Source: Bugula neritina
Lineage: Eukaryota; Animalia; Bryozoa
Assembly: GCA_964035545.1 (NCBI GenBank)
Contig: OZ037773.1
Location: forward strand, 10,011,751 to 10,075,750
DNA: 64,000 nt
Reading direction: 5' to 3'
Below, piece by piece: positions 16,104-63,577 of this stretch. The position numbers and the translations under genes are program-made. Positions within the stretch are counted from its first letter, which is position 1. Each line of letters begins with the position of its first letter. The notes under the pieces were generated by a model that made no database searches, was not told the DNA's origin, and saw nothing but the letters and a program-made list of their open reading frames with translations.

Positions 16104-21773
<5,670 letters not shown>

Positions 21774-31000: not shown

Positions 31001-33109
31001 CTACTTAAGGAAGCACGAGGAGTTGCCTTTCCAGAAAATGAAGAAACCACAACCAGTGGACATGCATAGAGCCTGGCAATGTATCTCAGTATAGGCTGTA
31101 AGAGGGTCAGCAAAGATTAGCATCTCAAGAGCAGCGTCAGCAGCTTTTCCTTTCAGCTGTTGGCCAGTAGAAGAACCATCTGAGTTCTCTGTCAGCTGAA
31201 AAAGTTTAGAGGTTCCTAGAGCTCCTAAAATATATCCATAGATATATTTTCACCTGTAGCTTAATGGCAGGCTACAACATGACAGCCAAACTAGCTTTTT
31301 GATTGATTGACTGAATAAAAAATGCAAAAATATTAAAATTGTGTGGGAATAATTTACCAAATAACAGAGTTTCTCCTGTCATATAGCCAGATGCTGCTAC
31401 AGATGACTTGCTAGTTGTGAATGAGGAATTGAGTTTTTCATCATCAAATATTGAATAAGATTTTGCCATTGGAGTTGCACCTTCACCAGGCAGTGGCAAT
31501 GCTTCAGCGAAACTGCTTGATTGGTTTTTAATTTCGAACGGACTTTCAGTTGAAGCAGTCATCTTTTCACCAAGTTGGACAGATTTCTTTGTGGAAGTGG
31601 CCAAAGGGTGTGTAAGAGATGAAGATGGTTTCGCTGAGTTGGAGCTTGAAACAGGAGGTGTAGAGATAGCTTTAGTCAAACTGGTGGTACTCTCAGATGT
31701 TCTTGTCTTTGCCATCTTGTCAAGAGGCGATGGAGATGTTCCTTCTTCTGGTAACTTTTCAAGAAAAGGTGCAGACGTTGCAAAGGTCCCTATTGTTGAT
31801 GAACTGCTACCAGGTGGTGGGAGTGTTGTTGCCAAAGCAGTCATCTGATTTTCAGACAAAGACAAACCGGTTAATGCTCTACCTACTGTGGTTTTGGAAG
31901 GTGACATTGGTGATTGTAAGATTGTTGAAGCGACGGTGGCGATGGGGCCATTATTCTGATAAGAATATTCTAGATTGCAGACAGCCTCTTTTTTATGAAC
32001 GCATAAGTTCAGGTTCTCATCAAATCTGTGCGAAGGTGGATAGCAGACTCGCTGGATTGCAACACCTTTAGAGCAAGTGTAGTATGACTGGCAAGAGAAT
32101 TCATCTGGGTAATCTCCATCTTGTCTTCCATTGCAGTGAAAGTCAGAGCCATCTACTAACATATTTTTTATTCAATTTATATTCAAAAGGAAATTCATTA
32201 ATGAGCAACATTTACACCTTATACAGTCAATGTTGCTTTAATAAAAATATTATTCTCAAGATAGATTTGATAACCAGACATACATAAGGGATTTTAGCTT
32301 CTATGACTCACCAGTAACTGTTTCCGATAAGACAGGAAGCAAAGTTTGAGGAGTGTCTGGGTACGAGTAGTCGAGAGTACACTTGGCATCTTGCTTGTGA
32401 ACACAAATTAGTTGCTCTTCATCAAATAATCGAGAAGGAGGAAAGCAATCATCATGGGTTGTGATGTCACCATCTCTGCAGGTGTAATATGCAGCACAGG
32501 AGAACTCGTCAGGATAATCTCCATCTGGTCTTCCTGCACAGCTGAATTCTGCAGTGGCTGCAAAATGGTGAGACAACATGGATATTGGTGAGCATGGGTA
32601 AGTCAAACAGCCGGCAATGAGAACTAAGTTTGCATGTTGAGGTGTTATTGTGCATGCATGCATGCATGTTTACCACTTAGAATTACTATAATAATAAAAA
32701 GTATAGTATAAATATTATTTATGTCAGCAGTTATAGTGCTTATTTGATCGAAAGTACTTCAAACAAATTTTACATTAGCAAAAAATAGTAGGTAACTATA
32801 TATCAAATAAATTTCATTACTTAGAATTTAAATCCTCATCTTTTAGAATAAATTTCTCACCATGATAATTTTTTTGCTTTTTGTAAAACATTTATGCAAA
32901 GTAATAAAAGATACCAAAGCATTATTTCTTAAAATTGAGATAAAAACCCATACTAAGAACATAGGATTGTACTAAATGATATTGTCAATTAAATTAGTAA
33001 AATCTTACTTAGCATTTATAATTCAGAAGAATAAGATCTTACCTTTAACTGTAACGGCCAAAGTCATTGACAATGCTACGAAATGTAGTAACATATGCAT
33101 GTTGATCAT
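31001..33109 (-). CDS. Secreted protein: signal peptide, 2 chitin-binding type-2 (peritrophin-A/CBM14) domains, S/T/P mucin stalk, C-terminal PAN/apple-like domain
   Basis: Exons 33109-33043 (MINMHMLLHFVALSMTLAVTVK), about 32558-32311 (CAGRPDGDYPDEFSCAAYYTCRDG..C..LFDEEQLIC...C), about 32152-31358 (CNGRQDGDYPDEFSCQSYYTCSKG..C..FDENLNLC...C plus stalk) and 31224-31001 (..EIHCQALCMSTGCGFFIFWKGNSSCFLK*). All introns phase 1. Confidence 0.85.
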
Positions 33110-34213
33110 TCTTAGAGCAACATCTGGTTGACTCTAACGTACCCAAGCAACTGCTCATATATATTTTTACCGTCTTGCTTTGAACAGATGAAAACTTTCA
33201 ACTTTATTATTATGTTACATCAAAGTTTGCTAATAGCAAAAACAACTTTTAAGTCAAACTTTAATCATGATGATGCACACGACAAGCCGGTTGATATGAA
33301 CATTATCCAAATTAACTTTTACAAGCAGTTTACATGATAGAAAAACAGCTCTTTTATATTAAGGTGGTTCAACGTAAAAATGTATGCATTGCCTATGCAA
33401 GTATTAATTTACTGCTTCAACTTAAAACTGTTACTAAAACTGTGCTCTCATGCGCTCATTCATATAGGCCTATAGGTGTAAAAGTTATGTAACACTTGCT
33501 CCTGTATTGTATTGTACATGGAACGTTTTAGCTTTGGCCAAGCTAAATTTGCAAGCTTGTGAAAATGCTTCAATTCATGCACTTTTGTAATAGCTTCCAA
33601 TTAGTTATTCTTTATACCTGAACTTTTGTTGGCTTGAATGTCAAAGTATTAGTTGTTTTATAGTCAAAATTTAGCTTTTTTTTATAGCTAGACAAAATTC
33701 AAGCGGGTTGAGCTAGCTATTTTTTAAAGTTTTCATTTAAGTTAACTTCCTTAAATTTAAACATAGAATTTTAAGTACATTTGATACCTTAAGGCTATAA
33801 GTTCTTCAAAGATTTTGGGCTGTTCAAATAATTTGATATATATTTGCAACATTCAGACATATTTATTGTAATAGGCAATATCAATCATATAATTATTAAT
33901 AATTGAAGCAGCAATTCCTCCAGCACAATGTTAGAATAATTGACAACAAAAACTACTACATCATGATAAATGGATGTCAACCAAAAAATTAACTAGACAT
34001 GTTAAATACAATTGTGAGCAGACATGATTTCTCATTATCAATACAAAACTATATTTAATTTATAATGTTTCTTGGTTAACACGTTCACATTGTACTATAA
34101 AGATAATCATTGGTTTTCTGGTAAATATGTTCAACAATAAACTCTTCCGAGAATCAAACTGCACATAAAAAGCATAAAACTACAAAGACAGTTCAAATTA
34201 TTAAGAAAAGTTG

Positions 34214-35788
34214 TCAAATTATTTTGTAAAACAAGATGTGATTGGCTGAAGAGGTCATAGCAGCTGATTTAGAGATCATTCCCAATCTTAAAACTGACCG
34301 CATAACACCAATTATTAGAAAAGATGTAGAAAAAGTCACAGCCATGAGTCATGCATAATGCCTGACAGTGAACAACAGAGTAGACTACAGCCTTGGTGTC
34401 AATGCGGTAATCCTTGTAGATGTCTTTTTTGACAATCAACTTGCTGATTGAAGCATTGTTTTGAGTTCCCTCAATTTCAAAGAACTTGAGGCTTTCTGTG
34501 AAATAAAAAAAAGATTATCATAAATCAGCAATATTGTCAGTATTGGAACAAAAATTATATCTTTGTATTAAGTTTCACTATTGTTTTGTTATAAAATTTT
34601 AGCTTATAAGAAAGTTATGCCAAAAGCTATTGATTGAAATGCTTTGTTGATCTTAGCAACACACCTTAGCAACATATTCTAGCAACACACCTTAGCAACA
34701 TATTATTCTAGTAACACACCTTAGTAATATGACCTAGCAACACTCCTTAGCAACACACCTTAGCAACATGCTATAGAAACATACTTTAGCAACATACCCT
34801 ATAGCAACATGCTCTAGCAACATGACCTAGCAAACAATCTAGCAACACTCCTTAGCAACATGCTATAGCAACACCCCTTAGCAACATATCCTAGCAACAC
34901 ACCTTGGCAACACACCTTAGCAGCATACCTTAGCAACATACCCTAGCAGCATACCCTATTAAATAACCTAGCAACATGCTATAGCAACACATTTTAGCAA
35001 CACACCCTAGCAACATGCCTTATATAGCAACATACCCTAGCAACATATTTCAGTGACATATAGTGCTACATAATCGGGCTGATAGTATTAAAGCCTTAAA
35101 ACTGCAATCTTAGTATAAGCAATAATAAAGCATGAAACAATGACAGTTTAACAGCAACTTTTGAGAGTTTAAAGTATTCTGAACAGCTCAATTTTCTCTG
35201 GAGGTCGTGACGGTAATTCTCGAGACTATAACCTAAATACCACTATAGTTCTTTTTGTAAATTGAAATGACAACTTCCTAGAATTACCAGAGGATTGAAG
35301 TGTCACAAGTTTGTTGTGCAGTTCTTTCTTTGTTAAGCCAGGTGGTTCGTTTTTAGATCTGGGATGCTTTTCTCCTTTAGCTAGAAGTACAAGATTAGTA
35401 TTTATAACATTTGAAAACCAATAATACAATACTGGAAGGATCTGAAACTGTAAACTAATTTATTATATGTAATACATATATATGTGTGTGCTTGTGCCTG
35501 TGCCTGTGTGTGTGTGTGTGTGTGTTTGCGTGTGTTTTATATGAGTGTGTGTGTGAGAGTGTGTGATGTGTTTGTGTGAGTGGGTGTGTGTTTGTTTTCA
35601 AAGCTTCTGCTTGCACTTATAACAAAGCATTACTTTAATAAAATGCCCTTCTAACAATACTAACAGCACATCAGCAGCAAACAAATGAAATCAACAGAGA
35701 AGATTAATCAAATATTACCTGCAATCAGGAGAGCAATGCTTCCAAACACTAAAAATGCTAGCAGCAGGTGACTAGTCTTCATGGCCAT
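34214..35788 (-). CDS. Small secreted protein with a PAN/apple-like Cys domain, paralogous to the C-terminus of the neighbouring chitin-binding gene
   Basis: Exon 35788-35719 MAMKTSHLLLAFLVFGSIALLIA; exon about 35380-35288 AKGEKHPRSKNEPPGLTKKELHNKLVTLQSS; exon 34495-34214 ESLKFFEIEG...VYSVVHCQALCMTHGCDFFYIFSNNCVMRS...LFYKII*. An extra internal exon near 35232-35150 is possible. Confidence 0.7.
34652..35046. repeat. Degenerate 13-bp minisatellite with TAGCAAC core, about 30 units
   Basis: cttagcaacacac-type units. Confidence 0.9.
35483..35592. repeat. Imperfect (GT)n microsatellite
   Basis: Direct reading. Confidence 0.85.
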
Positions 35789-36574: not shown

Positions 36575-37452
36575 CTAATCATCCTTGATGTCAATGTATC
36601 TTCTGTCATCTCCATCATCATCTCTGCACCAACAGAGGTCGTCATCGTCATCACAATCTCCGCTGTCGAATCTGTCATTGTCATCATCGAGGCAGTAGGA
36701 GTTACATCCTCGTGGGTTTCGAGGGCAATAATCATCATCAGCATGAGCAGACAACACCAAACCTAAATAAATAGTTATGGTAGTTGTAAGTGAGAGTAGG
36801 TAATATGATAGTTGCTACAAGTTATAGGTAGTATAGCTGGCAATATACTGCATGATATATGTCCTTTAGACTGTAGTTATGCTAAACTTATAAAAGTATA
36901 TTCATATAGGCACAATCAGCAGGCAGTGCCTATACTGGATAAATAAAATTATGAGTGGAAAATAGCAGTCATAACAGTCAACATGCCCATCACATTGAAT
37001 ACATGATAAAACAACTTTTTTAGAAATATCGCACCTTTGAATTATGCATTTCTTATAGATTTTTAGGTTTACTATCCAAGTTTTCAATTAAGTACAAAAG
37101 TGTAAGTCAAACTTGCAAATTCATAAATGTTTTACATATAACATAACTTATATAAGTCTTACATCATCAGCAGAGTAATATTTGTGACAGAAAAGGATGG
37201 AGTTTAATTTGAAAATATTTTGTTAATTCAGTTTGTATCTACAGTTTATCATGGTAGAAAGGTTTATAGTTTTTCTGACATGCTAGATAAATTGCAGCTT
37301 ATTGCAGCATTTATGTAAAATTTATAATATAACGGCAAATATTTTTCATCCCTTTATGTCAACTGGACTAATATCAAGAAGAAGTAGATAGATTTTTGAA
37401 GCTACTTACACAATAGGACAGCTACAAGCAGAGCAATAATTGATAGCCTCAT
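36575..37452 (-). CDS. Secreted Asp-rich (anionic) CS-alpha/beta defensin-fold peptide
   Basis: Exon 37452-37410 MRLSIIALLVAVLL, phase-1 splice to 36762-36575 CLVLSAHA-DDDYCPRNPRGCNSYCLDDDNDRFDSGDCDDDDDLCWCRDDDGDDRRYIDIKDD*. Cys spacing C-x6-CxxxC-x12-C-x6-CxC with GxC. 5' UTR exon (donor about 37694) and TATA at 37744-37753. Confidence 0.8.
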
Positions 37453-40400: not shown

Positions 40401-41759
40401 AGCTGTTAAGCTATATAGAATGTTGTTTCATGCGGAATTATGTCGATCAGCATTTAACTCCACTGTAATAAGTCATTAATCATAAACTGATTACCTGTCA
40501 CACATTTAATTGTTAGACTGCTATTATATAGATGATTGATTAGCTCAATATAATGTATATATACACATCCTGTTTTCATTCACGTCAGATTTGATTGTAC
40601 ACAGCGCCCACACTATTCCACCAAATTTTATCTTTTGGCATTGGGTAAGATCACTGTTAGCCTTAGGTTACATAACACTTGGTTCAAAAACACTCAAAAG
40701 AATAGAAATTATCAACAGAAAGTGACATTGTTTTACAGTGCAAAGGCCAAACACTGAGAGAATAAAATGTGCCCACATGCCCATTTTGTATACAATTTTA
40801 TGATAATTCAATTTTCTTTGAAAAGAAAACTTCCTTTTTTTAGTTTTAGACTGCATACAATGCATTTACTGCACACAAAACCTACGCAGTATATGAACTG
40901 CAATGCGCAGGTAGCTTGTAGCTATTCCAAAAGTCTTTGTATAAAAAGGACAAAGGAAATATTCTCTCTACTCTAGTTTCAGTGTGGGCAGGTGAGGTTT
41001 TATAGCTATTATTTATAATGTGTATATTATAGCTGGTGTATATTATATTAGTTTGTGTATTATAAATTACAGCGTACGTGTTATAATATTAGACGTGGTG
41101 TATATAATATATCATATCATATTGTCTATAATGACAATTTGCAGTAGGCCTATATTATAATAATGTACCGCAATTAAATCCATTGGCATAAAGCAAATCT
41201 TTTAGTATTAAAACTTATCATTTTTAAATTTTTTTAAAATAAAAAATTAAAGTGCACAATATACACAATATTTATTGACCATTTTATTGCAGTGGATTGT
41301 TTTCAACTAGATTCGGTAATCGATCACAAACCACCTTAATAGTCAAGCTCCATACAAACATTTGTATAAAACCTGCTTTTAAACAAATATACAATAAATA
41401 TGAAATAATAAAATTATAATGAAACAAAGTAGCGTTTGGTCATAAAGTGAGATCTTCATCAAATTGAAAAATACATATATTTTGCTATAGTTTGTGAATG
41501 TACTTAACTTTTTAGTTACTGAAGCCAACTATAAATAATAATTATTATTAATTTAAATTCAAATATATGTAATAGTTTACTACTCTTTTTATCTCTGCAA
41601 GCAGAAGCATGGGTAAAAGCTGTTGTAGTTTCAAGTAGCTATATAGCTGTCGTTGCGCAAGATTATCAAGTATAGTAATAATAATATATTGTTCTGATGT
41701 TTTTCAGTCAGAAAGACAGGGAAAGACAACTTCAAATACAACTCTGTCAACCAAATAAA

Positions 41760-42595
41760 ATGAAGTGTTTAGTTGGTGCTTTGATGTTGATATGCTTGCT
41801 TGGTGAGTAATAGTGTTAGCATTATGTTAATATACCATTTGGTCATAAACAGCATTTTATTGTTGCTTTAGTGTAGTTTTAATCATGAAACTTATAGCTG
41901 GTTTAATATTAAGTATATAGTAATAAAATCTCATTTATAAATATTATGTAACAACCACAATGAGCTAGAATTGAGGTACAGCAATAGTATATGTGTGCCA
42001 CTAGCATATTTTTAAATGTCTTGCAGTACTATAACAGCGTCATTTATATATGTGACCCCAATATTAATAACCTGCAAAAGTTTTCTCAGAGTGAATTGTT
42101 AGTACACGGATAGGATTTGTGGCTATGCCATTATGGTTAGGGTGACAGGTAGTCTTACCCTACCTCTGCTACAACATTCTTCTATATCCTGAGGCTATGT
42201 GCCACATTATAAGAGAATACTGTGCATCTATAGCAATCAGTTTGTAAAGTTAGCAGATGTCTTTCACCTGGTAAAGTTACAACAACCCGAACATAATATA
42301 AACTCTGAATGGCTTCATATTTTCAACCATTACTTGTCAATTTGTAGTTATCCTCCAGACAGTGAGGGGAGACAATCGCTGTATTCAAGTTAGTAAGCGT
42401 GTGTGCAAGTACACCTGTAAGTCATATGGCTATGAGAATGGTAAATGTGACTCTGCAGGAGTGTGCTTCTGCACGCAGGGAGACAACAGACGAGCCAAGA
42501 GGTTCGACATGCTGCCTAATGCTGACAGCGTTATAAATGCTGCCCGGAATGGAGTCGGGGCTCTCAGAGATTCCAGCAAAGAAGTTGGTAAATAA
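41760..42595 (+). CDS. Secreted CS-alpha/beta defensin-like precursor with C-terminal propeptide
   Basis: Exon 41760-41802 MKCLVGALMLICLL, phase-1 splice to 42348-42595 VILQTVRG-DNRCIQVSKRVCKYTCKSYGYENGKCDSAGVCFCTQGDN-RRAKR-FDMLPNADSVINAARNGVGALRDSSKEVGK*. TATAAAA at about 40940, UTR exon donor at 40992, AATAAA at 42845. Confidence 0.82.
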
Positions 42596-43239
42596 GGGTT
42601 GTCTACACCATGCTGAGGACTAAGTTACTTGAACATTACGACCTCAAAAGCTTTAGCTTATATTATATATGCTTGTACTTTTTTACATTATAATGCACAC
42701 ATATTGTGGTAATTGTTCTCTATACATCTATACTTGATTAAAAAATTTATAGGCTGTACATTTAGCATTATATATGTGCATTCAAAATTGTTATTATTAT
42801 ATTGCTTGATTGTAACTAAATTATATGATATACATACATGAAGAAATAAATATAAGGATTATTGTTGTTGGAATGACTGGTGAGAAATGAATAATATTTG
42901 TGATATTGAAAGTTGTCTTCTCTTAGCCTTAGTATTTCAAAATGTAAAGTACGTACTGCAGGTGTTGCAAACTTTATCTTTGAATACAAATATTACTAAA
43001 TATATAGTAAAAGAAGGTATTGCAGCAATTTGCACCTACTATTACAACAGATATAAAATATAGAGAAATTATGAAATTATCTTCCTTGGAAGTACTTGCA
43101 GCTCCTTTTCTGCAATGCAAAAAATGGCACGGAAATTTCTATATGACTAAAATTAGAATGGGAGAAAAATTGATGCCTAAATTCAAGAATAATTTTTTAT
43201 AGATTTTGCAGAATGTAACATTTGTTGAGTTGACCCAGC

Positions 43240-43296
43240 AGCCCCTGCAATGTAATCGGTTAGCGCGCCTGCTTGCAACCAGGAGGTCTGTGGGGG
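43240..43296 (+). mobile_element. tRNA-derived (SINE head-like) fragment
   Basis: GC-rich island: D-loop-like tgtaatcggttagcgcg, stem cctg/cagg around ttgcaa, then aggtc; no GTTCGA T-loop, so not a functional tRNA. Confidence 0.4.
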
Positions 43297-43479
43297 CAAT
43301 TATTACACATATAAGTATATAGATTGTTAAGTTTCAGACTTCTAAGATCTAAATACGAGCATAAGAGCTCATACCCAAATTAGACATGTTAACTAACACA
43401 ATTAACTAAAACAGTGAATTGGTAATTGTAATTATCTCAGCTGTCTAAGCTTTTCAAAGTTTTTTAATTTTGTCTTCAA

Positions 43480-43600
43480 TTCTGATAACTTTTACAATTT
43501 GATGGATTGATAATTTATGCCTATATTCAACAAATAGCAAAATTAGTCTTCTATCTTTAATTAGCCTTCAAATTTGTATTTAATGTGGAAGCAGCTAAGA
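43480..43600 (+). repeat. Diverged dispersed repeat, inverted copy at about 50375-50490
   Basis: tcaaatttgtatttaatgtggaagca matches the reverse complement of tgcttccacattaaatgcaaatttga, with looser similarity over about 120 bp. Confidence 0.65.
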
Positions 43601-44509
43601 TTATATTGCCTTGATAAAGAGTACAAATGACTTGGTAAACCTCAAAACAAAGAGTTGAAGTTGAGCAATTTCGCGTTTAATTTCTTGTTGCAAAAGTATA
43701 CTCATAAAATTGCAATTCTATGTCCGCCATAGTTTAATTAAACTGAACTTTATGGTAGAGAACAGAATATCATACAAATCTAAAAATATGCAATATATTA
43801 ATTACTGTATTGCTGCGTTTCCATGACATTCGAATTATGCGCATTTGCATTAACCTATAGTTGCGGTTTCATTCGATGTGACTATAGTTCCATGGGGCAA
43901 ATGAAAAAAGCCATTTGAATAATGCAATAATGGAAACGTAGTGTACGTATGATTATCAAAAATATCAATTTGAAAAATTTATCTTTAGGATTTGTGTAGA
44001 GTAATCTAGAAAAAATCATGTGATGACTGATTTAAAAAGCTTAAAGCAGGTGATTTTGCTTGATGGATAGTATTTCAGTACTAGAGGAGCGGAAATTAAT
44101 AATCTGTAGAGCTACATAGAAAGAAATCAAAGAGGGCTGTCTTTTTTTGAGTGCAGTGAGAGAAAAGAGTAATTATAATATATTAACATTAATTTATTAA
44201 ACTTCGCTGGGAAAACTATAAGTTAAAGAGTAAAATTATTATGTAAAATTAAAAAAAAATGATATTGTCAAAGAAATAGTTAACTTTAAAACACGTGCAA
44301 ACATGAGTTTAGAAAAGCATATATAACTAACTTATTTTCTGATCTAAATGATTTATTTATTTGTTTGTTTTTTTATGTTTTAAGATGCTTGAATTATTTT
44401 AACTTTTGTATTTTCTATAAACTTGTGCAAGCTGAAATGTTATTGAAAGCTTATTCCATTATTTATAACAAAATTTTGAAGTAAGTGAATATTAAAAAGG
44501 CTATGTTAA

Positions 44510-46335
44510 AACTTTTGCAGAGTATAAGAAACTTTATTTAGTAATCAATGTGAAACAGAATTATAACCAATAGTTGTGTAACACCAACAATATTTGATAA
44601 ATACTAGGTAGCTAAAAACAAATTTACTTAAACAGGTCACCAATGCCAAAGAATACAGCAGTGTAGTGAAAATTGCTTCGTGGAAAAGACTGCAGCCGTT
44701 TACAAAATTAATTTGCAACGTTCTACAGCAAAATATTGAATGGGTCGTTGTTTCCAAGAGATATTTCACTCAACATGCAGTGAGTGAATACTTCTGTATC
44801 AGGTCTGTATGTGATCTAGTAGTGTCGGGTTTGGTAACCTCTGGTGGTTTGGTGGTATGGAGCTTGATAACCTTTAGTGGTTTGGTGGTATCTGGTAGTT
44901 TGGTAGTGTGGGGTTTGGTAACCTTTGGTGGTTTGGTGGTATGGAGTTTGGTAACCTTTGGTGGTTTGGTGGTATCTGGTAGTTTGGTAGTGTGGAGTAG
45001 TTTGGTAGTGTGGGGTTTGGTAACCTTTGGTGGTTTGGTGGTATGGAGTTTGGTAACCTTTGGTGGTTTGGTGGTATCTGGTAGTTTGGTAGTGTGGAGT
45101 AGTTTGGTAGTGTGGGGTTTGGTAACCTTTGGTGGTTTGGTGGTATGGAGTTTGGTAACCTTTGGTGGTTTGGTGGTATCTAGTGGTTTGGTGGTATGGA
45201 GTTTGGTAACCTTTGGTGGTTGGGTGGTATGAATTTGTTGCATAGCGATCTAAAACATAAAACAAACTATTATTACTTCAACTTAAATTACTTACTGCAT
45301 GTTATATTTTGGAAAACTTGCTTTACTGATTACTGCTCTATAAAATCTTTCCCTCAATTCAGTAAATTTCTACATTTCTGTTAGATTAAATTACTTTCTC
45401 CCCAAATCTTCTATGCACTTCATAGAATATAAAAACCTACAGAGATGGTAGCAAATGCTAACAAAAACGTTTCTTATATAAATTATCAGAAAATGTTTAT
45501 TCATAACTATGATTAATACATTATAGAAAGAAGCAGCAAGACTTACTATGGGGGCGCTGACGCCTAGAATAAGAGGTTGAGTAACTTCCGTAGCTAACTG
45601 CACCTGTAATATAAAAGTTAGCTTATAGTTTAATGTCTTGTTATGATATGGTACAGTAAATTCAAATATATGTTCACAGAGAGAAATCAACAGCTTGAAA
45701 CTTTTCTTAGACAAACTTAGAGCTTACCGAGAGCCAATACCAGGCCGAGGATCAACAAGATTTTAGAGTCTGTAAAACAATAACATAATATAACATGCAA
45801 GTATAAAATTATTATAATGTGTGGTTCAAAAGTAATTAAAAGTTCAGATGCATGAAAGATATTATAAGAACAACTAGTAGAAAGATGAGCAATTATAACA
45901 ATATAATTTCCATAAAATATACCATGCTCCATATAGTAATGCTTTTTCTTTTTAATCTTATTTCAAGTAACTAAATAATAAGAATATATTAACTGTTATG
46001 GGTGAGAAAAAAATAAAAAATAATATTTTAGGTACTTAAAAAAAGTTTGTTTTAAGCAGCTTAATAAAAAACTATATTTTTAATCAATTATCTGGTCTTG
46101 GTAAAAAATTATTAAAAGTTGTGCTCACCCATGATAGAAGTTTAGTTGTTCACCAGCTACCAGTTGAAGATACTGCAAGCAGAATGAATATTTTAGAAAT
46201 CGACTCTGCTTATATACTCCTGGAGAAGGTTTTAATCACATGAGGCAATAGAAAGAAAGTTCCCCTTGACTCAGGAAAATATTTCACACTTCACTGACAA
46301 TTTATGATTTATCATTAATTTATCCAATTACCAGA
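44510..46335 (-). repeat. Left arm of inverted gene duplication (partner 51775-54020)
   Basis: Promoter, introns, exons and 3' UTR align in reverse complement, e.g. 46128-46200 versus 51885-51956 nearly identical. Confidence 0.9.
44816..46132 (-). CDS. Secreted Tyr/His/Thr/Gln-rich hexapeptide-repeat protein, copy A
   Basis: Exons 46132-46129 (ATG G), about 45769-45728 (DSKILLILGLVLAL), 45603-45547 (GAVSYGSYSTSYSRRQRPH) and 45249-44816 (NRYATNSYHPTTKGYQTPYHQTTRYHQTT...GYQTRHY*). Splice phase selects the YHQTT frame. TATA at about 46210-46216; poly(A) signal at about 44533-44538. Confidence 0.82.
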
Positions 46336-46561
46336 AAAACTCCAAGTCACTTTGCTATTATGATTAATGAATATTTTTGCCTATATTTAGCTCACGTCAG
46401 CCAAACCAACCAATGGGATCGTGTCTTGCTATTATTAATTGGAAAATTTAAGTTCACTTGTAAAAGTGGAAGAGTTATTATATATAGTTTCCGTATTCTC
46501 TTTGTACTACAATTTTGAAATAGCTAAGGCATGCTTATTATAGTATAGCTTGTATATATAG

Positions 46562-46623
46562 TTCTATTTTGCTATATATAGTATATATAATATATTATAT
46601 ATACTATATATAGCAAAATAGAA
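46562..46623. repeat. Perfect 62-bp AT-rich palindrome
   Basis: ttctattttgctatatatagtatatataata|tattatatatactatatatagcaaaatagaa; centre between 46592 and 46593. Confidence 0.95.
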
Positions 46624-49600: not shown

Positions 49601-51774
49601 AATTTAAGAATTATTAAAAGTTTGTGACACAAAAAAAATTCTTTTCTTTGACTTCAAACACTCATCAGTTTCCAAGTCAAATAAAGTTAAATGAAATGCA
49701 TTTTTGGATTATAGTACTTTAGAAGGAAATAGAGATGAATTGAAAGTAATTAAAGTTGAAAATAAATTAAAAAAAATTATATACACACCTAAATAGATTG
49801 AAATCTATTAATAAAATTCAACAATAGCCATCGTCATCTTGTCAATCACTACAACTAGGTATTAGAAAAATATTATATATAGAAGTAAACAAATCCAGGC
49901 ATTCTGCACAATTAAGATTAATTTTATAGTTATTTTCTTACTACTTTGGATTTATTTATTTTGATCTAGTTTATTTATTTCCCTATAAGTATTTAGCACC
50001 ATTTGTTAGGCAGAATGTGAAACAAATCAAAAGCTTTCCAGTGATGAATAACAGTCAACCCAAAGTTTCAGCAAAATCTATGTGAAGAAACTAATTTTCT
50101 TTTTAAAAATTAGAGCAACTTATTTAGGAAGCGTGTGGCATATACAGTAATTAGCAAACTTCTAATTATCTTTAAATCAATCATAAATTATAATGCAGTT
50201 ATAAATTGTCTACTAGATGAGGTAATAGCATGCCCCTGTCCCAGTATGTGTCACTTGCTAGCACCCGGGCACTTACAAGCACCTGCCGACAAACGCCATA
50301 TACTTCCTAACTACAACTCTATATCAATTATCTAATCTGTAAATAGCTTCAATATCACAATAACAGGAATTGTAATCTTTGCTTCCACATTAAATGCAAA
50401 TTTGATAAACACTTTAGAAGATAAGATTCTTGTTATTTATTGAAGATACATAATTTATCAGCCATCACGTTGTGAAACTTATTAAATATGAGGAAATGCT
50501 TCAACTTTTAAAAAATGAAATCTAATGCATTTTTTCATAGTATATAGCATAACTCAAGTGTTATCAAAGTGAATTTTAATAGTGCAAATCTGACATCACC
50601 TATATAATATGAAATAAGTGAATGGCTGATAATTTAAGTCAGCTGCAATCTACATAAAAACTTCACCGAACAGCACATACTGCGACCCATGTACATGACA
50701 ATTAAATATCTTGCCCGTAAAATTTTTTAATGCTACCTTATGGGCGGGAATGCCAATTACAATACTCTTATAGTTTTTAGACTGCTAGAAAGAATTGTGG
50801 GTAAATAGAGCATTGAACTATATTTTCCTGGTTTTTCATCACAGGTAGTGCATCAGGTAGGTTATATACTCTGAGTGATTATAGAAGCAACAACAGTATA
50901 CTTGGAATAATGAATAGTGAGTGATAACCATGAGGATATATAGCATAACTTATCAAGGCTAGAATGCCTGAGTCATCTAGACATTTAATAATAGTATAAT
51001 AGAAGCACACGTAGTACGTAATGTCACATTCTGATTGGTCCATATATTTACAATATCTATTATGCGTGATGAAGTGAATTTTAATCAATTAGTCATGATT
51101 AGGAAACAGCAATGTAATAAGTGATAACTTTTTGTATGGAGAAAGTTTCTAAACAATTGAAATTAACTTGCTGTGAGGCTGGGTAGACGGGGCAAAATAT
51201 ATCCTTTATAGATTATTGTAACACTTTACAAGAATATATTATATAATATTTAGTCTCCGCTCAGTTGAGTTACTTCAGTATTATAATAACAAATGCAATA
51301 TTGTGTTATATAATATATTACATAATATAACAACAAAAAATATTAGCTTTGGAGAAAAATTATGAAAATTAGCAACTTTTAGCTAAAGGATATTTATGCA
51401 TCTGTGAATTAACTTGAAGAATATTTATTAGTTGTTTAGTAAATAGTTAGTAAATTAATTTGTAAACAATTGTTTCACACATTTTATCGATTAATATCAA
51501 AAATCTTTATGTAGTAAATGTCTTCAATCAGCGATCTTTAACAACATAGCTATTGAGTTAATTAATTCACAATACAGTAAAAAAGACAACTTTGAGCTGT
51601 TGTTGAATTCCCGACTCGTTTATAGCAGAAGGTACACATTTTCTTCAAGTAATTAAAACATGGCACACGCGATGATATCATTTGACAGATTACATACAGA
51701 CTCTGGCTGCGGTGCACTAAATATAGATGAAAAAGCTCATTAATCACAATACCAAGCGGCTTATAGAAGCTCTG

Positions 51775-54020
51775 TGGTAATTGGATAAATTAATGCTAAA
51801 TCATAAATTGTTAGTCAGCATGAAACAGTTTCGGTTGCCTCATGTGATTATAATCTTCTCCAGGAGTATATAAGCAGAGTTGGTTTCTAAAATATTCATT
51901 CTGCTTGCAGTATCTTCAACTGGTAGCTGGTGAACAACTAAACTTCTATCATGGGTGAGCATAAGTTTTAAATGAATTTTTACAAAGACCAGCTATTTGA
52001 TTAAGCTTTTTTTTACTGCTTAAAAACCTTTTTGCAAGTAATATAATATTATATTCTATTTGTTTTATTTTTGTTACAATCAGTTAATATCAATATTATT
52101 TAGTTATACCCAGGTTAACATATAACTTTAAAAAGATAAAGTATTACTATGGAACATGGTTTATTGTAGGCAAATGATATTGTTATATATAATTATTGCT
52201 CATCCGTTCTAGTTGTTTTTGGTATTCCTTCATGCTTTTTAATTTTTAATTACTTTTAAACTCGACATTATATTAGTTTTTTACTTGTATGTTATATTAT
52301 GTTACTGTTTTACAGACTCCATAGAAGAATTTTATACTTGCATATTATATAATATTATTGTTTTACAGACTCTAAAATCTTGTTGATCCTCGGCCTGGTA
52401 TTGGCTCTCGGTAAGTTCTTAGTTTGTCTAGAAAAAGTTTCAAGCTGTTGATTTCCCTCTGTGAACAGATAATTGAATTTACTGTACCATATTATAACAA
52501 GACATTGAACTATAAGCTAACTTTGGTATTACAGGTGCAGTTAGCTACGGAAGTTACACATCCTCTTATTCTAAGCGTCAGCGCCCCCATAGTAAGTTAT
52601 GCTGCTTCTTTCCATAATGTAATAATCGTAGTTGTGAATACACATTTTCTGATGATATATATAAGAAAAAGTTTTGCTAGTATTCGACTATCACCTCTGC
52701 AGGTTTTTATATATTTTGTGAAGTGCGTAGAAAATTTGGAGAGAAGCTAGTTTAATCTAACAGAAATGTAGTACTTTACCAAATTGAGAGGGAAATTTTA
52801 TAGAGCAGTAATCCGTCAAAATAAGTTCTAGAGAGTAGTATAGAATAAATCATTTATGTTCAAATAAAAATAGTTTGTTTCATGTTTTAGGTCACTACGT
52901 CCCAACTACCAGATACCACCAAACGACTAAAGGCTACCAAACCCCACACTACCAAACCACCCCACACTACCAAACTACCAGATACCACCAAACCACCAAG
53001 GGTTACCAAACCCCATACCACCAAACCACCAAGGGTTACCAAACTACCCCACACTACCAAACCACCCCACACTACCAAACCACCAGATACCACCAAACCA
53101 CCAAGGGTTACCAAACTACCCCATACCACCAAACCACCAAGGGTTACCAAACTACCCCATACCACCAAACCACCAAGGGTTACCAAACTACCCCACACTA
53201 CCAAACCACCAGATACCACCAAACCACCAAGGGTTACCAAACTACCCCATACCACCAAACCACCAAGGGTTACCAAACTACCCCACACTACCAAACCACC
53301 AGATACCACCAAACCACCAAGGGTTACCAAACTACCCCATACCACCAAACCACCAAGGGTTACCAAACTACCCCATACCATCAGACCACCAAGGGTTACC
53401 AAACTACCCCACACTACCAAACCACCAGATACCACCAAACTACCAAGGGTTACCAAACTACCCCATACCACCAAACCACCAAGGGTTACCAAACTACCCC
53501 ATACCACCAAACCACCAAGGGTTACCAAACTACCCCACACTACCAAACCACCAAGGGTTACCAAACTACCCCACACTACCAAACCACCAGATACCACCAA
53601 ACCACCAAAGGTTACCAAACCCCATACCACCAAACAACCAAAGGTTACCAAGCCCCACACTACTAAATCACATACAAATCCAATACATAGTTATTCACTC
53701 CCTTCCTAGTAAACTATCTCTTTGACACAACGACTCATTCAACGTTTTGCTACAAAATCTAGCAATAAGTTTAATGAAAGACAGTATTTCTTGAGCTTTT
53801 AGTTGACAATTGCATGTAGTGCATGTACTTTTATAGACATGAAACTTTTTTCACCAAAATGATGTAGTCTGTGACATTTGTCACATATTTGAATGAAATT
53901 GTGTTCAGTCATGTGTGCAATTTTTTATCAAATATAGTTGATGTTACATATATCTTTGCTTTTATTCTGTTTTTATTTTAATTACTAAATAAAGTTTATA
54001 ATATTCGGTAAAACATTTTA
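51775..54020 (+). repeat. Right arm of inverted gene duplication (partner 44510-46335)
   Basis: Reverse-complement homology to 44510-46335, including intron sequence. Confidence 0.9.
51951..53666 (+). CDS. Secreted Tyr/His/Thr/Gln-rich hexapeptide-repeat protein, copy B
   Basis: Exons 51951-51954 (ATG G), 52369-52410 (DSKILLILGLVLAL), 52535-52591 (GAVSYGSYTSSYSKRQRPH) and 52891-53666 (SHYVPTTRYHQTTKGYQT...GYQAPHY*). TATATAA at about 51867; AATAAA at about 53988. Confidence 0.85.
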
Positions 54021-55559: not shown

Positions 55560-55767
55560 TGTGACAGTGTGGGTTGTGACAGTATGCATTGTCACAGTAT
55601 GCATTGTAACAGTATGCATTGTAACAGTATGTATTGTGACAGTATGCATTGTTACAGGGTGCGCTGCGACAGTATGCATTGTTACAGTATGCATTGTGAC
55701 AGTATGCGGTTGTGACAGTGTGTATTGTTACAGTATGCATTGTTACAGTATGCATTGTGAGAGTATG
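55560..55767. repeat. 15-bp minisatellite (acagtatgcattgtg/t) about x13
   Basis: Direct reading. Confidence 0.88.
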
Positions 55768-56567: not shown

Positions 56568-56797
<230 letters not shown>

Positions 56798-57140: not shown

Positions 57141-59504
57141 ATGGGTAAGTTTATAGAACAAAATTTCATCAGCATATTCTGCCTTAAATAATTTTAGAGT
57201 TGCATTAAAATTGAATATTTTCCCACATGGCCTGTAAACATACTTTCTCATTATTATTTAGGAGTATCATGTAATTTTCTCAAAAAGTCATTGTGAGTAA
57301 CTTTTTAGCTCACTGACCTTTTTGGTTTACCAGTTATTGCAGTTGCAGCTTAAATATCATTACTGCAGATTCTAAGTTTCTATACATAGTATAATAGCAA
57401 TACTGTTTAATGCAAATTGTAGATAACAAGATGCTGATACTGATTGGCCTTGTGGCTGTTTTCGGTAAGTATAGAAAACATGCTACAACTTCATTTAATA
57501 CATTTATTGTATATATATGTCATATACATAATTGCCAATGCTTTTGATAAAATTGTTTTAAAAGCAGGTATTGAGAGATATAGGTAATAAAAGTGACAGC
57601 ATAAACCCCAAGACACTTTTGAATAAATAAAGCTAATCTTTGTTTTATAGTAAAAATTATTTTTTTTAAAATAGTAAAGTTGATGCATAATAATTGATTT
57701 TTACTAATTTTTTAGTTATTGCATGTATATAGCAATATTTGCATATAATGCATTGGTTTTCTTATTATGTAGTTTTTGCTAGTTTCAATATAAAATCAAC
57801 CCTTCAAACAACAATATATTGTTTAGCCTGTGAAACATTAATTTATATAATAATTGAGACACTTCATATATTGTAATATTTTGTTGTATTGTAAACAGCA
57901 TGCGTCAGTGGATACAGTAGCTATCCCAAACATTCCTACGGTCACCATGGTTACCAACCATCATCTCACAAACCAAACACTTACTGTAAGTTAACAAGGA
58001 ATTAACCGATTATTAAAAATGTTTATTTTTTATTTTTCAATATTATCTAATTTGTTTCATCAGGCTTTTGTCTCTATAATTAATTTATAAATTCTGAGAA
58101 ATTTTTATTGGATATATTATTTTAATACAATTTTGTTTAAGAATTTTTTGTAGCTAACGCAGGTGCTGCAGTACCACAAACCCTAATTTATAATATTTTG
58201 AGTTTTCATGATATTTAAACAAATTTTTCACTGTAGAGTTTATATGATAACACCTAAATATATGCATATATGATAAACAGAGAATTACTTATAGTTAAAA
58301 CATTACCATGGCTAAAGCAAATTAATATATTATATCAATAATCAATATAGCAGTGAGATCTATATATTATAGCAATACGTATAAGTTGAAATTTCCTGAT
58401 GTTTAACCACTTCATCACACTATACCACTGCATACAGTATACAACTGTATATAATGTAGACACAAGGGTTTGGTCACAGTGGGAACAATGGTCGCACTGC
58501 CCTGTTAAATGTGGAGGGGGAGAACAAAGGAGATACAGAATATGCACCACCAAGACTCACTATGGCTACGGTCACTCCAACAACAAAGAGTGTTACGGCC
58601 CTTCCTATGCCAGAAGAAGATGCAACACGAAATGTTGTCCAGGTTTGTGGTTCAGACAACTCCAATATTGTACGAGTCGTAAAATCAGAATGCAACATAC
58701 CAGTGACAATATATTGCATGCAGCAGCATTAATTTATAGGTAGCGATTTGGGTAACATGATTTCAGTGCTTCACTTTTGAGCAGAAACAAAAGATTTTGC
58801 ATGATCAGTTGTTTCATTTTCACTTGAAATTGCATTTGCATTTGTAATACTTGCATGAGGAACTCTACCAGTTACTCTACCAGTTACTCTACCAGTTACT
58901 CTACCAGTTACTCTACCAGTTACTCTACCAATCACTATATAATTATCAAGTGTTCTACTAATTACTGTATTGAGTACTGCATAATCAGTACAACAAAACT
59001 GTTTTGTAGTTGATGGACGCTGGGGTCAATGGACTGGCTGGTCTCAGACTTACAGTGGATCTTACAAACAGACCAGATCCAGATACTGCAACTACCCAGC
59101 ACCTCGCTGCGGAGGCAGAGGTTGCTATGGGGACAGCAAACAAGTTAAAGCTGTTCATCGTAAGTTGCTTCAACTGCAAGGTTTAACAAACATGCAAAGG
59201 CATGTTATTTAAATCATAGTTTTAAAACTGCAAAGCTTTTACAGGATATCATAATAGTTTTATTAGGATATAGTTGTTTAAGGAAGCAAATCTATTGATG
59301 ATTTTTATTGTTGATGTTTTAGTTCCCCACCCTCACTACCAACCTAAAGCACATCACGGACCGTCTCACTACCAACCTAAAGCACACCATGGACCGTCTC
59401 ACTACCAACCCAACATTCACCATGGACCGTCTCACTACCAACCCAACATTCACCATGGAGCGTCTCACTACCAACATAAAACACACCACAAACCAAACTA
59501 CTAG
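57141..59504 (+). CDS. Secreted protein with two thrombospondin type-1 repeats flanked by His/Tyr-rich segments
   Basis: Exons 57141-57144 (ATG G), 57423-57464 (DNKMLILIGLVAVF), 57899-57985 (ACVSGYSSYPKHSYGHHGYQPSSHKPNTY), 58460-58642 (WSQWEQWSHCPVKCGGGEQRRYRIC...CYGPSYARRRCNTKCCP), 59010-59159 (VDGRWGQWTGWSQTYSGSYKQTRSRYCNYPAPRCGGRGCYGDS) and 59323-59504 (HYQPKAHHGPS-type 11-mers x4, KPNY*). TATAAAA at about 57068. Confidence 0.85.
58862..58930. repeat. 12-bp minisatellite (actctaccagtt)
   Basis: Intron between the two TSP1 exons. Confidence 0.9.
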
Positions 59505-59983
59505 ACTACTTAGTTATCTTAAGAAGGCTGGATAATGCAGATGATTTGAATTAATGTTTTTTTCACAAAGTTCTCTGGATGCATACACACTACATTGTTG
59601 CTGTTATGTTTTGTTCTTGACAACGGTTGTTATTGCTTGACTTATATAAATATTATTTGTTATATTGTTACTTGATAAACTTGTTTTACTCTCAGATAAA
59701 ATAAATTGTTGAATTTGCAAACGACAAGTCTGATTTTAAAACAATGCCACAAGTTGGTTCTTGCAAACTCAAAATAATTTGACCTCGTTACTATGTAACT
59801 TAGAACACAATTGACACAAGCTAAGCCCTATTTACTAATTCTTCAAAGCTGAAACTGTTCTTGTGTTATGCTGTATGGGAAAGCAATTGTCATTTGGCTG
59901 CTTTACTAACAGAAATTGCTGGGAATTTACGTTTGATCAAAATTCAATATTTAATGAAGTGATTGTTGAGTTGTTCCGCAGTG

Positions 59984-60119
<136 letters not shown>

Positions 60120-60667
60120 ATTTTCATCATAACATAGTGTTTTACAACTAGGATAATTTACAAGAGCAGAACAAGCAATTAAAAAAGAAACATAATAGTA
60201 ACAAATAACAGTATATCAAAATAAGCTGTCGGAAATGATGATGAGGCCCAGTGCGAAATAGCATGGCTAGTGGTACGCGGGCCCAATGTTGGCATGTGAG
60301 CACGATATTATATTTCCTTGTAAACAATTATGTTGAAAAGAAATCCTTGGATAAATCTGATATCCTAATGCAAACAAATCACTAGTAGGCTTATGACTTC
60401 TTACACAGAAAATTTCTTATGTGAAGTTGAACTCCAAAAATACACAAATAATTTAAATTTGTGACCAAAACAACTATAAGACAGAAAGACTTTTAAATGT
60501 ATATTATCTGGTATATTTTGAAAAAAACATTGACAGTATATATACTTAAATAATAAATTGTTAACAATCAAACTTATATGTTACTTTTTATGATAATGCA
60601 AGCAAAATCAACATATAAAGTTACAAAGTAATATTATTCCATATAAAACATTCAGTAGAGATCAATG

Positions 60668-61195
60668 TTATGCCTTGTACAGTATATAGCAGTGGCACTT
60701 GCCATTTTAATGTATTGAAACTTGGCACCGTTCTCTATACCATTAAACAGTTTTTCTTGCAGTTTCGCATTGCTTTTGTATATTTCCGAATAAGTTTCTT
60801 TTTATTTATGACAGCTAAAAGTTTATGAAATGTCAGATTACTTGAAGAGCATTACCCGAATGTTTCCAGTGTGTATATACAATTTTGTACAATATATAGC
60901 ATATTAAATATTATTTTTATACGTCGTAAATATGAAAGTATAACTATTATTGTATTTTTATCACTCTTATTTCAACTCGTTTTTATAAAACATGCAGTTG
61001 AAAAGCCTTAATTTTGAAAATAATTGCTTTAAACTTGTTAAATATCATGCATTAAATAAAAATTTAGTAAAATTTCATTAAGGTGCTATAAAAATCTAAT
61101 ATTTCAACAACAACAAAGCAAATATGTTATATTTTTAACTTACCCATTGCACTCAAAGCAAGCATGACAAATAAAAATAAAGAAATGATCTTCAT
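60668..61195 (-). pseudogene. Probable decayed defensin-like gene (or a short basic secreted peptide)
   Basis: Intact TATA (about 61565-61571), UTR exon (donor about 61484) and signal exon 61195-61144 MKIISLFLFVMLALSAM with phase-1 GTAAGT. Exon from 60814 reads AVINKKKLIRKYTKAMRNCKKNCLMV*; shifted frames continue GIENGAKF and NGKCHCYILYKA*. Confidence 0.55.
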
Positions 61196-63577
61196 GGTTG
61201 ATCTGGTTCTTCTACTATTACACACAGCAAATTTCTTTGTTTGAAATATTCTGTAAAACATAATAAAAATCTATTCCCATATAAGTTATTTTGCGCTGAG
61301 TTCCTAGATATTTATATGCATTTGATTATTGTTTTCATTTTTTTTGAAAAGTAATAGCAATCAGAAGATGTTAGAATTTTTTCATAACTATTTTAATCAC
61401 CTAACTATAAGCTGGTTGGTATTTTTGAACCAAGTAAGATGGTTAAAAATGTGACATTGAGTGAAAATATGTGTCATTTCTTACCTGCTTTGTATTTAGC
61501 AACTGTTATAGTTGACGTACCCAGCTGCATGTAGTGGATATAAACCTTTGAAACTATTCGCTGCTTATATACCTGTTTTTGAATCGAGGTGACCCAAGTA
61601 GCTTTAAGTTAATTGGCTAACAATGGTCATGGTGTCAGGAAATGGTTATTAATATAACACATTGTCCTATAACTTTTCACTCAGATTGCTTCATTCAAAA
61701 GGATTTGAAACAAATGAATTGTAATAGCCAAATGTATATTACATACACTTATATAGGTACAGTTCATATAATCTTTTATTGTAGAAATATACTGTGTCCA
61801 GGGGTTTTATAGTAGTAAATCATCCATCTCAAAAATAATTGGAGTCAAAAAAGGTTTGCTTTTCTAGTACCTACGTTCAGAAAATAATTATTCTTTAAAT
61901 AATATTTGATATCATAAAATAAAGAAATCCAACTTAAATTGTAAGATAAATATAAATTGTAAGATAAATATATAGGTATATAAATAGATATAATTTATAG
62001 GATATTCACTGCAAGTCATCTATTGCTTATCTTTGATGATATATGGTAAATGCCCTCATAAAGCATCATTAAAGTAACACAGTAGTGTGAGGCAATGTAC
62101 GCAAAGCTTTTTAATTTTATATTATATTCCAGTCATCCTAGCTTCCAACTCTATAGCATATGTCAAAATAATGTCAATCTTATATTGCTAGATGGAAATG
62201 GAAAACTGTGTAATAATATGGGCATGTTATATAAGATGAACAATGATCTTATAGGAAACATGATGACGAATGTGCAGCTGTGTGAAGTACTTTGACTATC
62301 ACAGAGATGTCTTTATAATTTAAACAACCCACTGTGAGGGGTCAAGGAGGGTTTCATTACTATATATCTAAGTCATCTCTGTCAATGAATTTGTAATTGG
62401 AATCATTTCAATATATTGTTAATGTAATTCAAGCTAAATTCATGAATAATGTTTTGCTTACCAGATTCATGCTATATATGTGGGTGAATGTTATATATTC
62501 TTTAGCGGTTAGAAAAACATTAAAAAGCTGGTTTTATATATTATCAAAATGAAGATAGCCAAATTCAAAAGCAATTGATGTATAAGTGTGTTTTCTTTTT
62601 GCAGCCAAATTAAAGCATGATTTACTGTATAGTTTAATGTAGATCTAAATTTTCATTACATATTAGACTGCTCTAATATTAATTTGATTACTACTTCTTG
62701 AAATCTCTATTTGTTTTAGTTCAGCATTTGTCAAAGCTGTGTGCGTATTTTAAAAGCAATACATTGAAGGTAATAGCTTTCTATTGATTTCCTTGGAATG
62801 AATTCAAAATTCAATCAAATAAAAAGTCAACTTTCTAGATATTTGTAGGTATAAAGTAGAAAAGCAGTCGCAGGGTGTATGTTAGAGATGAGATAAAGAT
62901 ATTATCCAGTGCAGAAATGATTAGTTGCTGAGAGAAGTAAAATCTGCTCAAAACATGGATTATATAAATATATGAGCTGAGTATTGGGAAAAATGAAGTA
63001 CATATAACAGGAGTTTCGAAATGATAGCATCAAAGCTGATGGTTACTTTAATTGTAATTTGCAATAATTAAGTTGAAGATAACTAATTAATATTCTCAAT
63101 GTGAAAAACCTTCTGATCCTTATAATAACGTGAAGAGACACGCAGAAATATAATAAACCCAAAGAGATGCCAACTTTGCAATAGCATGGAAATAGAGTTT
63201 AGTTTAAATTAAAAATAACAATAAAAATATAATATTGGTAGCTTTTACGACTAAATTTTATTGAATTAAGAACCTCAACTCCATAACAAGTATTTCAGGT
63301 TAAAAGCAGTTTGAAAGTTTATCAAAATTCTTCACATCATACCAGAGCCAGTGGTTGGCCGACTTAAAGCTAAAGAGAGGTATAGTAGATAATTCTAATC
63401 ACTCATTAAGCATTGCAGTGAGTATGTCTAAAGTGACTATATAGTATGTTGAAGTACGAAGCATGCTGAGCCCAGGCATACTTTCTCTATGTAATTTATA
63501 AAGCTCAAAGAAGTTGACAACTCCACAAATGTCTAGCTGGCTGTATATTACATTATATATTATGAAACTTTACATAG

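Follow-up and report, generated by a model that had tools for sequence, protein, structure and literature searches.

Introduction

Among the secreted proteins described so far, the cis-defensins of arthropods and molluscs, the peritrophins and intestinal mucins of invertebrates, the thrombospondin type-1 repeat (TSR) proteins and the foot proteins of mussels come closest to the products of a run of eight small genes on chromosome 9 (OZ037773.1) of the bryozoan Bugula neritina. Cis-defensins of the CS-alpha-beta type (an alpha-beta fold stabilized by cysteines) are defined by the six-cysteine framework C..CxxxC..C..CxC (PMC5234102), and a mature peptide placed on one exon behind a phase-1 intron is standard for invertebrate CS-alpha-beta defensin genes (PMC6435467). 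The run studied here covers approximately 30 kb with seven intact genes and a decayed one. It was analyzed within a window of 64,000 nucleotides (nt; positions 10,011,751 to 10,075,750 of the forward strand), at a distance of about 0.8 Mb from a chromosome end. The underlying assembly (tzBugNeri2.1, Darwin Tree of Life) has a size of 216.00 Mb and consists of 320 scaffolds and the mitochondrion; of its nine chromosomes, the longest has 35.64 Mb and the ninth 10.88 Mb (PMC11480708). A tunicate source of the DNA was also considered and rejected, as the spliced-leader pattern of Ciona is absent.

The ordinary defensin of the run shares with the cis-defensins the six-cysteine framework, a helix and two strands, a two-exon gene with a phase-1 boundary and a cationic core, but it stays below all Pfam cut-offs for defensins and carries a basic C-terminal extension of 32 amino acids (aa) behind an RRAKR motif. 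A neighboring Asp-rich copy, with 41% Asp and a charge of about -15, lies outside the usual cationic range. Like peritrophins and invertebrate intestinal mucins, a further product is secreted and contains two above-threshold CBM_14 domains which are followed by about 200 Ser/Thr/Pro-rich residues. Unlike them, it ends in a small PAN-like domain with four cysteines that also exists as a separate adjacent gene, and its gene evolves nearly neutrally and is frameshifted in a sibling species. Another protein has a canonical first TSR as known from thrombospondin-1, properdin and UNC5; it differs from these in belonging to a set of very small proteins (150-215 aa) in which a full TSR is joined by a reduced one, with flanking Tyr/His-rich low-complexity cassettes and a Tyr end, and which is encoded in at least 24 tandem copies. 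The two Tyr/His-repeat (YH) proteins are alike in kind to mussel foot protein 1 and other adhesives of the 3,4-dihydroxyphenylalanine (DOPA) type, being secreted, basic and composed of short tandem repeats with one Tyr each, together with Lys/Arg and Thr/Pro. However, they have no sequence homology to mussel foot protein 1 and consist of hexapeptides of the form xxxQTT with 10% His and 25-30% Thr, and the likeness appears to be one of working principle only.

Bryozoans are major fouling animals, and to our knowledge the proteins that serve their cuticle, skeleton, attachment or innate defense have hardly been studied. A literature search yielded no study on proteins of any of these four kinds, and a word search found no paper describing CS-alpha-beta defensins in Bryozoa. 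Within the literature searched, the exact gene models given below include the first CS-alpha-beta defensin found for this phylum. They also include a strongly anionic peptide with the cysteine scaffold of a defensin, and hexapeptide repeats of Tyr, His and Thr that form an orphan family. The leader of this family ties it to a large local family of mini-TSR proteins, so that exon shuffling and the turnover of cassettes in secreted proteins can be seen clearly here. Secreted-protein genes in tandem arrays are nothing unusual; the mini-TSR/YH family and the defensin-patterned peptide rich in Asp are novel forms of known kinds.

Results and Discussion

Three locally copied families within a larger array

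All eight small secreted-protein genes that the original prediction, made from the letters of the DNA, had placed in this run could be rebuilt by reading both strands by hand and joining the exons by script (coordinates without commas are window positions throughout). Every intron of the eight models is of the GT-AG type, every coding boundary lies in phase 1, the exons after the leader are of phase 1-1 in all models, and a signal peptide is present in every predicted product. The statement that each gene opens with a signal exon ending in a phase-1 GT applies to five genes (the CBM14x2-mucin-PAN, PAN-like, Asp-rich and defensin genes and the defensin relic), whereas YH-A, YH-B and the TSR-His gene begin with a coding exon of 4 nt ('ATG G') that precedes a signal exon of 42 nt, both in phase 1. 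Likewise, the TATA-like box which had been claimed for every gene is present in seven of the eight: a TATAWAD motif lies 20-150 nt 5' of their ATG (six of seven with the YH pair counted once; binomial P ~1e-3), and in this AT-rich window the same applies to 25% of positions drawn at random. A generic scan for signal exons is, by itself, not selective, as its 22 candidates are spread over the three phases as 7/9/6. A six-frame scan for cysteine patterns in the gaps between the genes did not reveal further hidden CS-alpha-beta, TSR or CBM14 exons.

The view of the original prediction that the folds are unrelated did not hold. The genes fall into three local paralogy groups, which were made by tandem or inverted duplication and phase-1 exon shuffling. 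The first group consists of the chitin-binding mucin with its PAN-like end and the adjacent stand-alone PAN-like gene. The second comprises the CS-alpha-beta defensin, the Asp-rich peptide, which agrees with it in cysteine spacing and in the 43 nt of its signal exon, and the relic, all with a common type of signal exon. YH-A, YH-B and the two-TSR gene form the third group, which is part of a mini-TSR family; at least 24 other copies of this family are found within 380 kb. The eight genes do not form a self-contained unit, and the region from which they are cut extends over at least 380 kb.

The extent of this region is given by the paralogues of the TSR exon, of which 29 are located between 9.80 and 10.18 Mb of chromosome 9, on both sides of the window; 24 of them were found at E <= 1.1e-8, with 50-63% identity. 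Six of ten neighboring TSR loci examined possess the leader of 'ATG G' and 42-nt signal exon, with the sequence 'ATGGGTRAG' 166-325 nt upstream. Among these six loci, four contain the same TSR exon, which in two of the four is then followed by a reduced second TSR, and a Tyr-stop tail is present in four of the six. In the mini-TSR loci (L022-L031) the Tyr/His/Asn-rich cassettes vary, and the C-terminal residue is Tyr, often as HY-stop. The signal exon of one TSR paralogue is identical to that of the YH genes in 11 of 14 residues and its tail is built from Tyr/His/Thr/Arg octapeptides, and because of these two features the YH genes look like TSR-less members of the mini-TSR family. YH-A, YH-B and the TSR-His gene have in common, besides the leader, a Tyr-rich exon and a basic, Tyr/His-rich tail that ends in Tyr-stop. 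YH-A and YH-B themselves are an inverted head-to-head duplication (44507-46403 vs 54020-51704) with approximately 80-84% identity. In the first group, the CBM14 gene ends in an exon with a paralogue at a distance of 3 kb, the stand-alone PAN gene (own-genome E 8.7e-4, pairwise BLASTP E 2e-10), and the motif HCQALCM is common to both PAN-like domains.

In our view it is fairly probable that the run represents three locally copied families within a larger array of secreted-protein genes, a birth-and-death nursery in which genes were copied in place. Accordingly read, the genes would be adjacent as a result of this copying rather than of gathering for joint control, in a subterminal neighborhood of lineage-specific secreted-protein genes. 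Each product would act outside the cell, at chitinous or mucous surfaces. The defensin might kill or restrain microbes, the CBM14-mucin-PAN protein might tether a glycosylated layer to chitin made by the animal itself, and the basic Tyr/His-rich proteins could serve as matrix or coating proteins that are cross-linkable via tyrosine and histidine; microbe-binding roles would fit them as well.

Several points weigh against this reading. The splice junctions are predictions from sequence, and the search for sequencing runs returned DNA and no RNA run. Full-length precursors of the defensin, YH-B or the CBM14 gene were not found in a large protein collection, in which only genomic open reading frames (ORFs) of the sibling species matched. 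The homology of the YH and TSR genes is deduced from the sizes and phases of the exons, from short stretches of similar peptide and from the composition of the tails, and the YH 5' regions exhibited no similarity to those of the TSR paralogues at the DNA level. The Asp-rich gene is supported neither by conservation nor by fold prediction. Finally, the presence of three families and of lectin genes side by side may still reflect shared regulation.

A rival explanation is the one offered by the original prediction, according to which one secretory epithelium co-expresses the genes to build and protect an adhesive, cuticular or skeletal material. The mucin would then be the chitin binder, the Asp-rich peptide a mineral modulator, the YH proteins cross-linkers, the TSR protein a component of the matrix and the defensin a preservative. 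The wall of B. neritina is chitinous and lightly calcified, which suits this idea, as do the several chitin-synthase-like genes of the animal, the signal peptides on all products, and the composition of the Tyr/His-repeat proteins, the TSR-His protein and the chitin-binding mucin, for which such a role is plausible. It also fits that TSP_1 proteins, C-type lectins and Asp-rich or other acidic low-complexity proteins recur in lophotrochozoan shell-matrix proteomes (PMC13425148). However, local duplication in a far larger array explains most of the co-location and thereby removes most of the need for an explanation by co-expression. With eight unrelated folds shrinking to three duplicated families, a dedicated material-building locus is not established. 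Moreover, the seven independent promoters (350 nt each) do not share sequence words beyond chance, in what is a weak test: five 7-mers occurred in at least four of them, compared to 11.9 +/- 7.1 in random sets, and no 8-mer did. The CBM14-mucin exon is frameshifted in the sibling species, and in the searches with YH-B and the Asp-rich peptide no homologous sequence was found among known adhesive or matrix proteins. Taken together, a locus dedicated to one material appears quite unlikely to us.

Sequencing runs of diverged relatives

Three sequencing runs (X1-X3) were compared with window positions 41400-46600 (5,201 letters). X2 and X3 were considered as possible transcripts and ruled out as such, because both cover the introns, with 90-95% identity, and contain no GT-AG joints; they are DNA of diverged relatives. 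Both runs carry the organism label of the DNA from which the window was taken and diverge from the window by 5-10%, in introns and exons alike, which fits cryptic sibling species in the complex of B. neritina. For two window genes, relatives in the databases were found only on metagenome contigs of the Joint Genome Institute (JGI).

The defensin, the Asp-rich peptide and the relic

The ordinary defensin gene (41760-42595, plus strand; exons 41760-41802, 43 nt, and 42348-42595) encodes a precursor of 96 aa, composed of a signal peptide, a 37-aa core with six cysteines and a charge of +2.7, the RRAKR site and the C-terminal extension. The cysteine spacing of C-7-C-3-C-9-C-5-C-1-C corresponds to the CS-alpha-beta framework. 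All profile scores remained below the respective thresholds (Gamma-thionin 17.9 bits, threshold 25.1; Defensin_2 14.8, 20.4; Defensin 15.2, 27; Toxin_3 13.2, 21.5). A single-sequence AlphaFold2 (AF2) model with a predicted local distance difference test (pLDDT) score of 73.5 placed a helix at residues 9-18 and strands at 23-26 and 32-35. When this model was used as query in Foldseek, all of the 50 best matches were CS-alpha-beta peptides, including drosomycin, plant and insect defensins, plectasin and scorpion toxins (TM <= 0.81; E 0.06-0.7, the chain being short).

A contig of 1 kb from the sibling species (L001) is 84% identical to the defensin gene at the DNA level. In exon 2, 16 synonymous and seven non-synonymous codon changes were counted, and from the first cysteine to residue 65 all 12 changes are synonymous; this exon is free of indels, compared to 30 gap columns in the intron and 23 in the 3' flank. 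The ordinary defensin gene is real and under purifying selection, and its designation as a conventional defensin could be upheld, although profile thresholds were not reached. In the genome it is single-copy, in the sense that the rather coarse own-genome search found no close paralogue. Most simply, its product would be an antimicrobial host-defense peptide. The RRAKR after the core (42479-42493) is a basic site of the processing type, and similar sites (RRQR/KRQR) are found just before the YH repeats (45547-45603 and 52535-52591). The location of these sites next to the payloads suggests proprotein cleavage.

The conserved defensin is one reason to think of the whole region as a host-defense island, in which defensins, lectins, mini-TSR proteins, the chitin-binding mucin and basic Tyr/His peptides would serve innate immunity at the surface or in the gut, with the low-complexity tails acting as antimicrobial or microbe-binding segments. 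Directly 3' of the window (10,075,751-10,095,750) lies an array of at least five tandem two-exon C-type lectin genes on the minus strand (L036:819-1573 and 7659-9236; L037:1923-8730). Lectin_C scored above its cut-off in one of the copies. Their sugar-binding EPx/QPx position varies from copy to copy (QPD, EPR, QPV, EPH, QPD), which argues for such an island, as do the many tandem copies with variable cassettes and the cationic nature of products. In Caenorhabditis elegans, genes for Gly/Tyr-rich antimicrobial peptides likewise occur in tandem clusters. On the other hand, Thr/Tyr-rich repeat proteins of 178-292 aa are unlike known antimicrobial peptides, and the Asp-rich peptide is strongly anionic. 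We regard an island devoted to defense as unlikely, and local copying remains the reading we prefer.

The Asp-rich gene (36575-37452, minus strand; signal exon 37410-37452, 43 nt; second exon 36575-36762) encodes a precursor of 76 aa, from which a mature peptide of 54 aa with an isoelectric point (pI) of 4.05 is predicted. The spacing C-6-C-3-C-13-C-6-C-1-C fits the CS-alpha-beta framework, and the signal exon agrees in length and phase with that of the ordinary defensin, with one mature-peptide exon following the phase-1 intron. A cationic charge was not found. The six cysteines and the high Asp content that had been reported for this gene were thus confirmed. The defensin fold which had been assigned to it on cysteine spacing and gene structure was not, as the AF2 model reached a pLDDT of 58.5 and contained no helix, and Foldseek matches are meaningless with a model this poor. 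The comparison with the Gamma-thionin profile gave E 0.14. An exhaustive HMMER search for homologues returned a single, compositional match (an Asp-rich protein of 2069 aa), and neither the ESM atlas nor the metagenome contigs yielded any. By the same coarse own-genome search, the gene has no close paralogue.

It could be argued that the run is partly non-functional and contains fewer true genes, the Asp-rich and/or repeat ORFs having arisen by chance in DNA that is rich in Asp codons or consists of minisatellites, or being pseudogenes of recent origin. The lack of a homologue or orthologous contig and the low-confidence model of the Asp-rich peptide agree with this, as does the run search, which found no transcripts, and in the repeat DNA several frames are open on either strand. 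However, the Asp-rich exon is in phase with the canonical signal exon to which it is joined, the signal cleavage context is clean, the six cysteines are spaced as in defensins, and the Asp codons are mixed (14 GAT, 8 GAC) rather than a pure triplet run. The frame of the YH genes exhibits a strong third-position bias, in-frame indels and an in-phase join to a conserved leader. We consider this explanation highly improbable and continue to treat these ORFs as members of locally copied families.

The third member of the group, a probable defensin relic (60668-61195, minus strand), has an intact signal exon (61144-61195) with a phase-1 GTAAGT donor and a decayed payload at about 60668-60814. Via the phase-1 join a CxxxC is read through before a stop occurs, GxCxC lies in another frame, and cysteines have been lost along with the frame. 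The decay that had been postulated is therefore visible. The derivation from a defensin is plausible, although DNA similarity to the live defensin exon is weak (alignment score 33, compared to 26.8 +/- 3.7 for shuffled sequences; z ~1.7).

The Tyr/His-repeat genes and the TSR-His gene

YH-A (44816-46132, minus strand, 178 aa) has the exons 46129-46132 ('ATG G'), 45728-45769 (42-nt signal), 45547-45603 and 44816-45249, the last of which contains the hexapeptide array and the Tyr-stop. Its inverted paralogue YH-B (51951-53666, plus strand, 292 aa) consists of the exons 51951-51954, 52369-52410, 52535-52591 and 52891-53666. The arrays in the last exons are built from units of the types KGYQTT, PYHQTT, PHYQTT and RYHQTT, so that the two Tyr/His-repeat genes that had been proposed are indeed present. 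YH-A contains 25% T, 18% Y, 15% Q and 10% H at a pI of 9.9; for both proteins the pI is 9.8-9.9, with 17-18% Tyr and 10% His, and it is this combination of basic charge, Tyr, His and short tandem repeats that makes an adhesive or matrix role conceivable.

Differences between YH-A and YH-B are distributed over codon positions 1, 2 and 3 as 5/5/25, that is 25 of 35 at the third position, and indels are mostly of 3 or 18 nt. This bias and these indel lengths fix the reading frame and indicate that the protein is constrained. Contigs of the relatives that cover YH-A contain 3-nt insertions. No copies other than these two were detected by the coarse own-genome search; weak matches to the array turned out to be unrelated satellites. 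A search for homologues of YH-B among 5.8 billion proteins produced 4541 word-sharing candidates, none with E <= 0.001, and no known adhesive was matched.

The TSR-His gene (57141-59504, plus strand) encodes 215 aa in six exons, namely 57141-57144 ('ATG G'), 57423-57464 (42-nt signal), 57899-57985 (Tyr/His-rich), 58460-58642 (canonical TSR), 59010-59159 (reduced TSR) and 59323-59504 (His-rich repeats of 11 residues, Tyr-stop). The first TSR, with WxxWxxW and six cysteines, matched TSP_1 at 32.7 bits (cut-off 21.6) and thrombospondin-1 from the Protein Data Bank at E 7e-17. The second reached 12.1 bits (E 0.23) and lacks the first cysteines, which makes it a reduced copy. The protein has a pI of 9.6, with 13% H and 11% Y, and the combination of TSP1 and His repeats was described correctly from the beginning.

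A more specific possibility would be that the mini-TSR and YH proteins form a bryozoan-specific, cross-linkable matrix of the zooid cuticle or of larval or rhizoid attachment, which is anchored to chitin by the CBM14-mucin-PAN protein, and that in the Asp-rich peptide a defensin scaffold has come to bind calcium and to modulate the calcite skeleton. We would assign such a scheme a rather low probability.

The chitin-binding mucin and the stand-alone PAN-like gene

The CBM14x2-mucin-PAN gene (31001-33109, minus strand) encodes 444 aa in four exons: 33043-33109 (signal), 32312-32557 (CBM14), 31358-32155 (CBM14 and a Ser/Thr-rich, mucin-like part) and 31001-31224 (PAN-like, with the stop). Position 31001, at which the original prediction let the cluster begin, coincides exactly with the stop codon of the fourth exon. 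Both CBM_14 domains, each with six cysteines, clearly exceed the Pfam cut-off of 22.1 bits (34.4 and 32.2 bits; E 2.4e-8 and 1.2e-7), as had been expected, and they are predicted to bind chitin. The mature part contains 14% S, 11% T and 8% P and has a pI of 4.8. As at least five chitin-synthase-like loci are present in the genome of B. neritina, an endogenous ligand for the CBM14 pair would be available.

The stand-alone PAN-like gene (34269-35788, minus strand, 129 aa) is composed of a signal exon (35719-35788), a basic linker (35288-35380) and the four-cysteine PAN-like domain (34269-34495). Against Pfam, its best-fitting family was KIAA0319_N at a sub-threshold level (E 0.013; 15.7 bits, cut-off 27), and the PAN-like copy in the CBM14 gene gave no match in a Pfam scan. 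The ten best annotated look-alikes in the ESM atlas all belong to the PAN clan (PAN_1 clusters; 0.90-0.94), at only 138-167 shared features. The assignment as PAN-like, which had been made before, is therefore moderately supported by these look-alikes and not by a profile match. No homologue of the domain was found in the metagenome contigs.

In two records of the sibling species, possibly from one sample (L034:1-1345 and L035, compared with window positions 30900-32221), the second CBM14 has lost a cysteine by a change from C to Y, indels of 1 and 2 nt break the frame in the mucin part, and the GT donor of intron 3 is gone. The PAN-like exon is intact in these contigs, without indels and with 91% identity. 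The gene evolves almost neutrally in this comparison. Because of the frameshifts, the lost cysteine and the lost donor, the CBM14-mucin part appears to be either dispensable or rapidly remodeled, and the gene may be decaying or restructured in the sibling lineage.

Neighboring genes and repeats

An RFX DNA-binding domain (Pfam E 1.7e-17) is encoded at 10507-10854 on the minus strand, and the conserved regulatory gene to which it belongs is located between two blocks of the secreted-protein array. Upstream of the run, this RFX-family gene is accompanied by a coiled-coil gene, and more TSR genes lie beyond.

Two segments between the defensin and YH-A (43140-43313 and 43836-44009) had a contig depth of 2,000-22,000 in all three sequencing runs. 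They belong to a very high-copy repeat and are probably the ends of a mobile element, and a related piece is present at 50380-50482. Introns and spacers further contain minisatellites with units of 13 and 15 nt as well as the microsatellites (AG)112 and (TG)65 (34652-35047, 55560-55767, 56571-56795 and 59986-60116). The 13-nt minisatellite at 34652-35047 lies within intron 2 of the stand-alone PAN-like gene.

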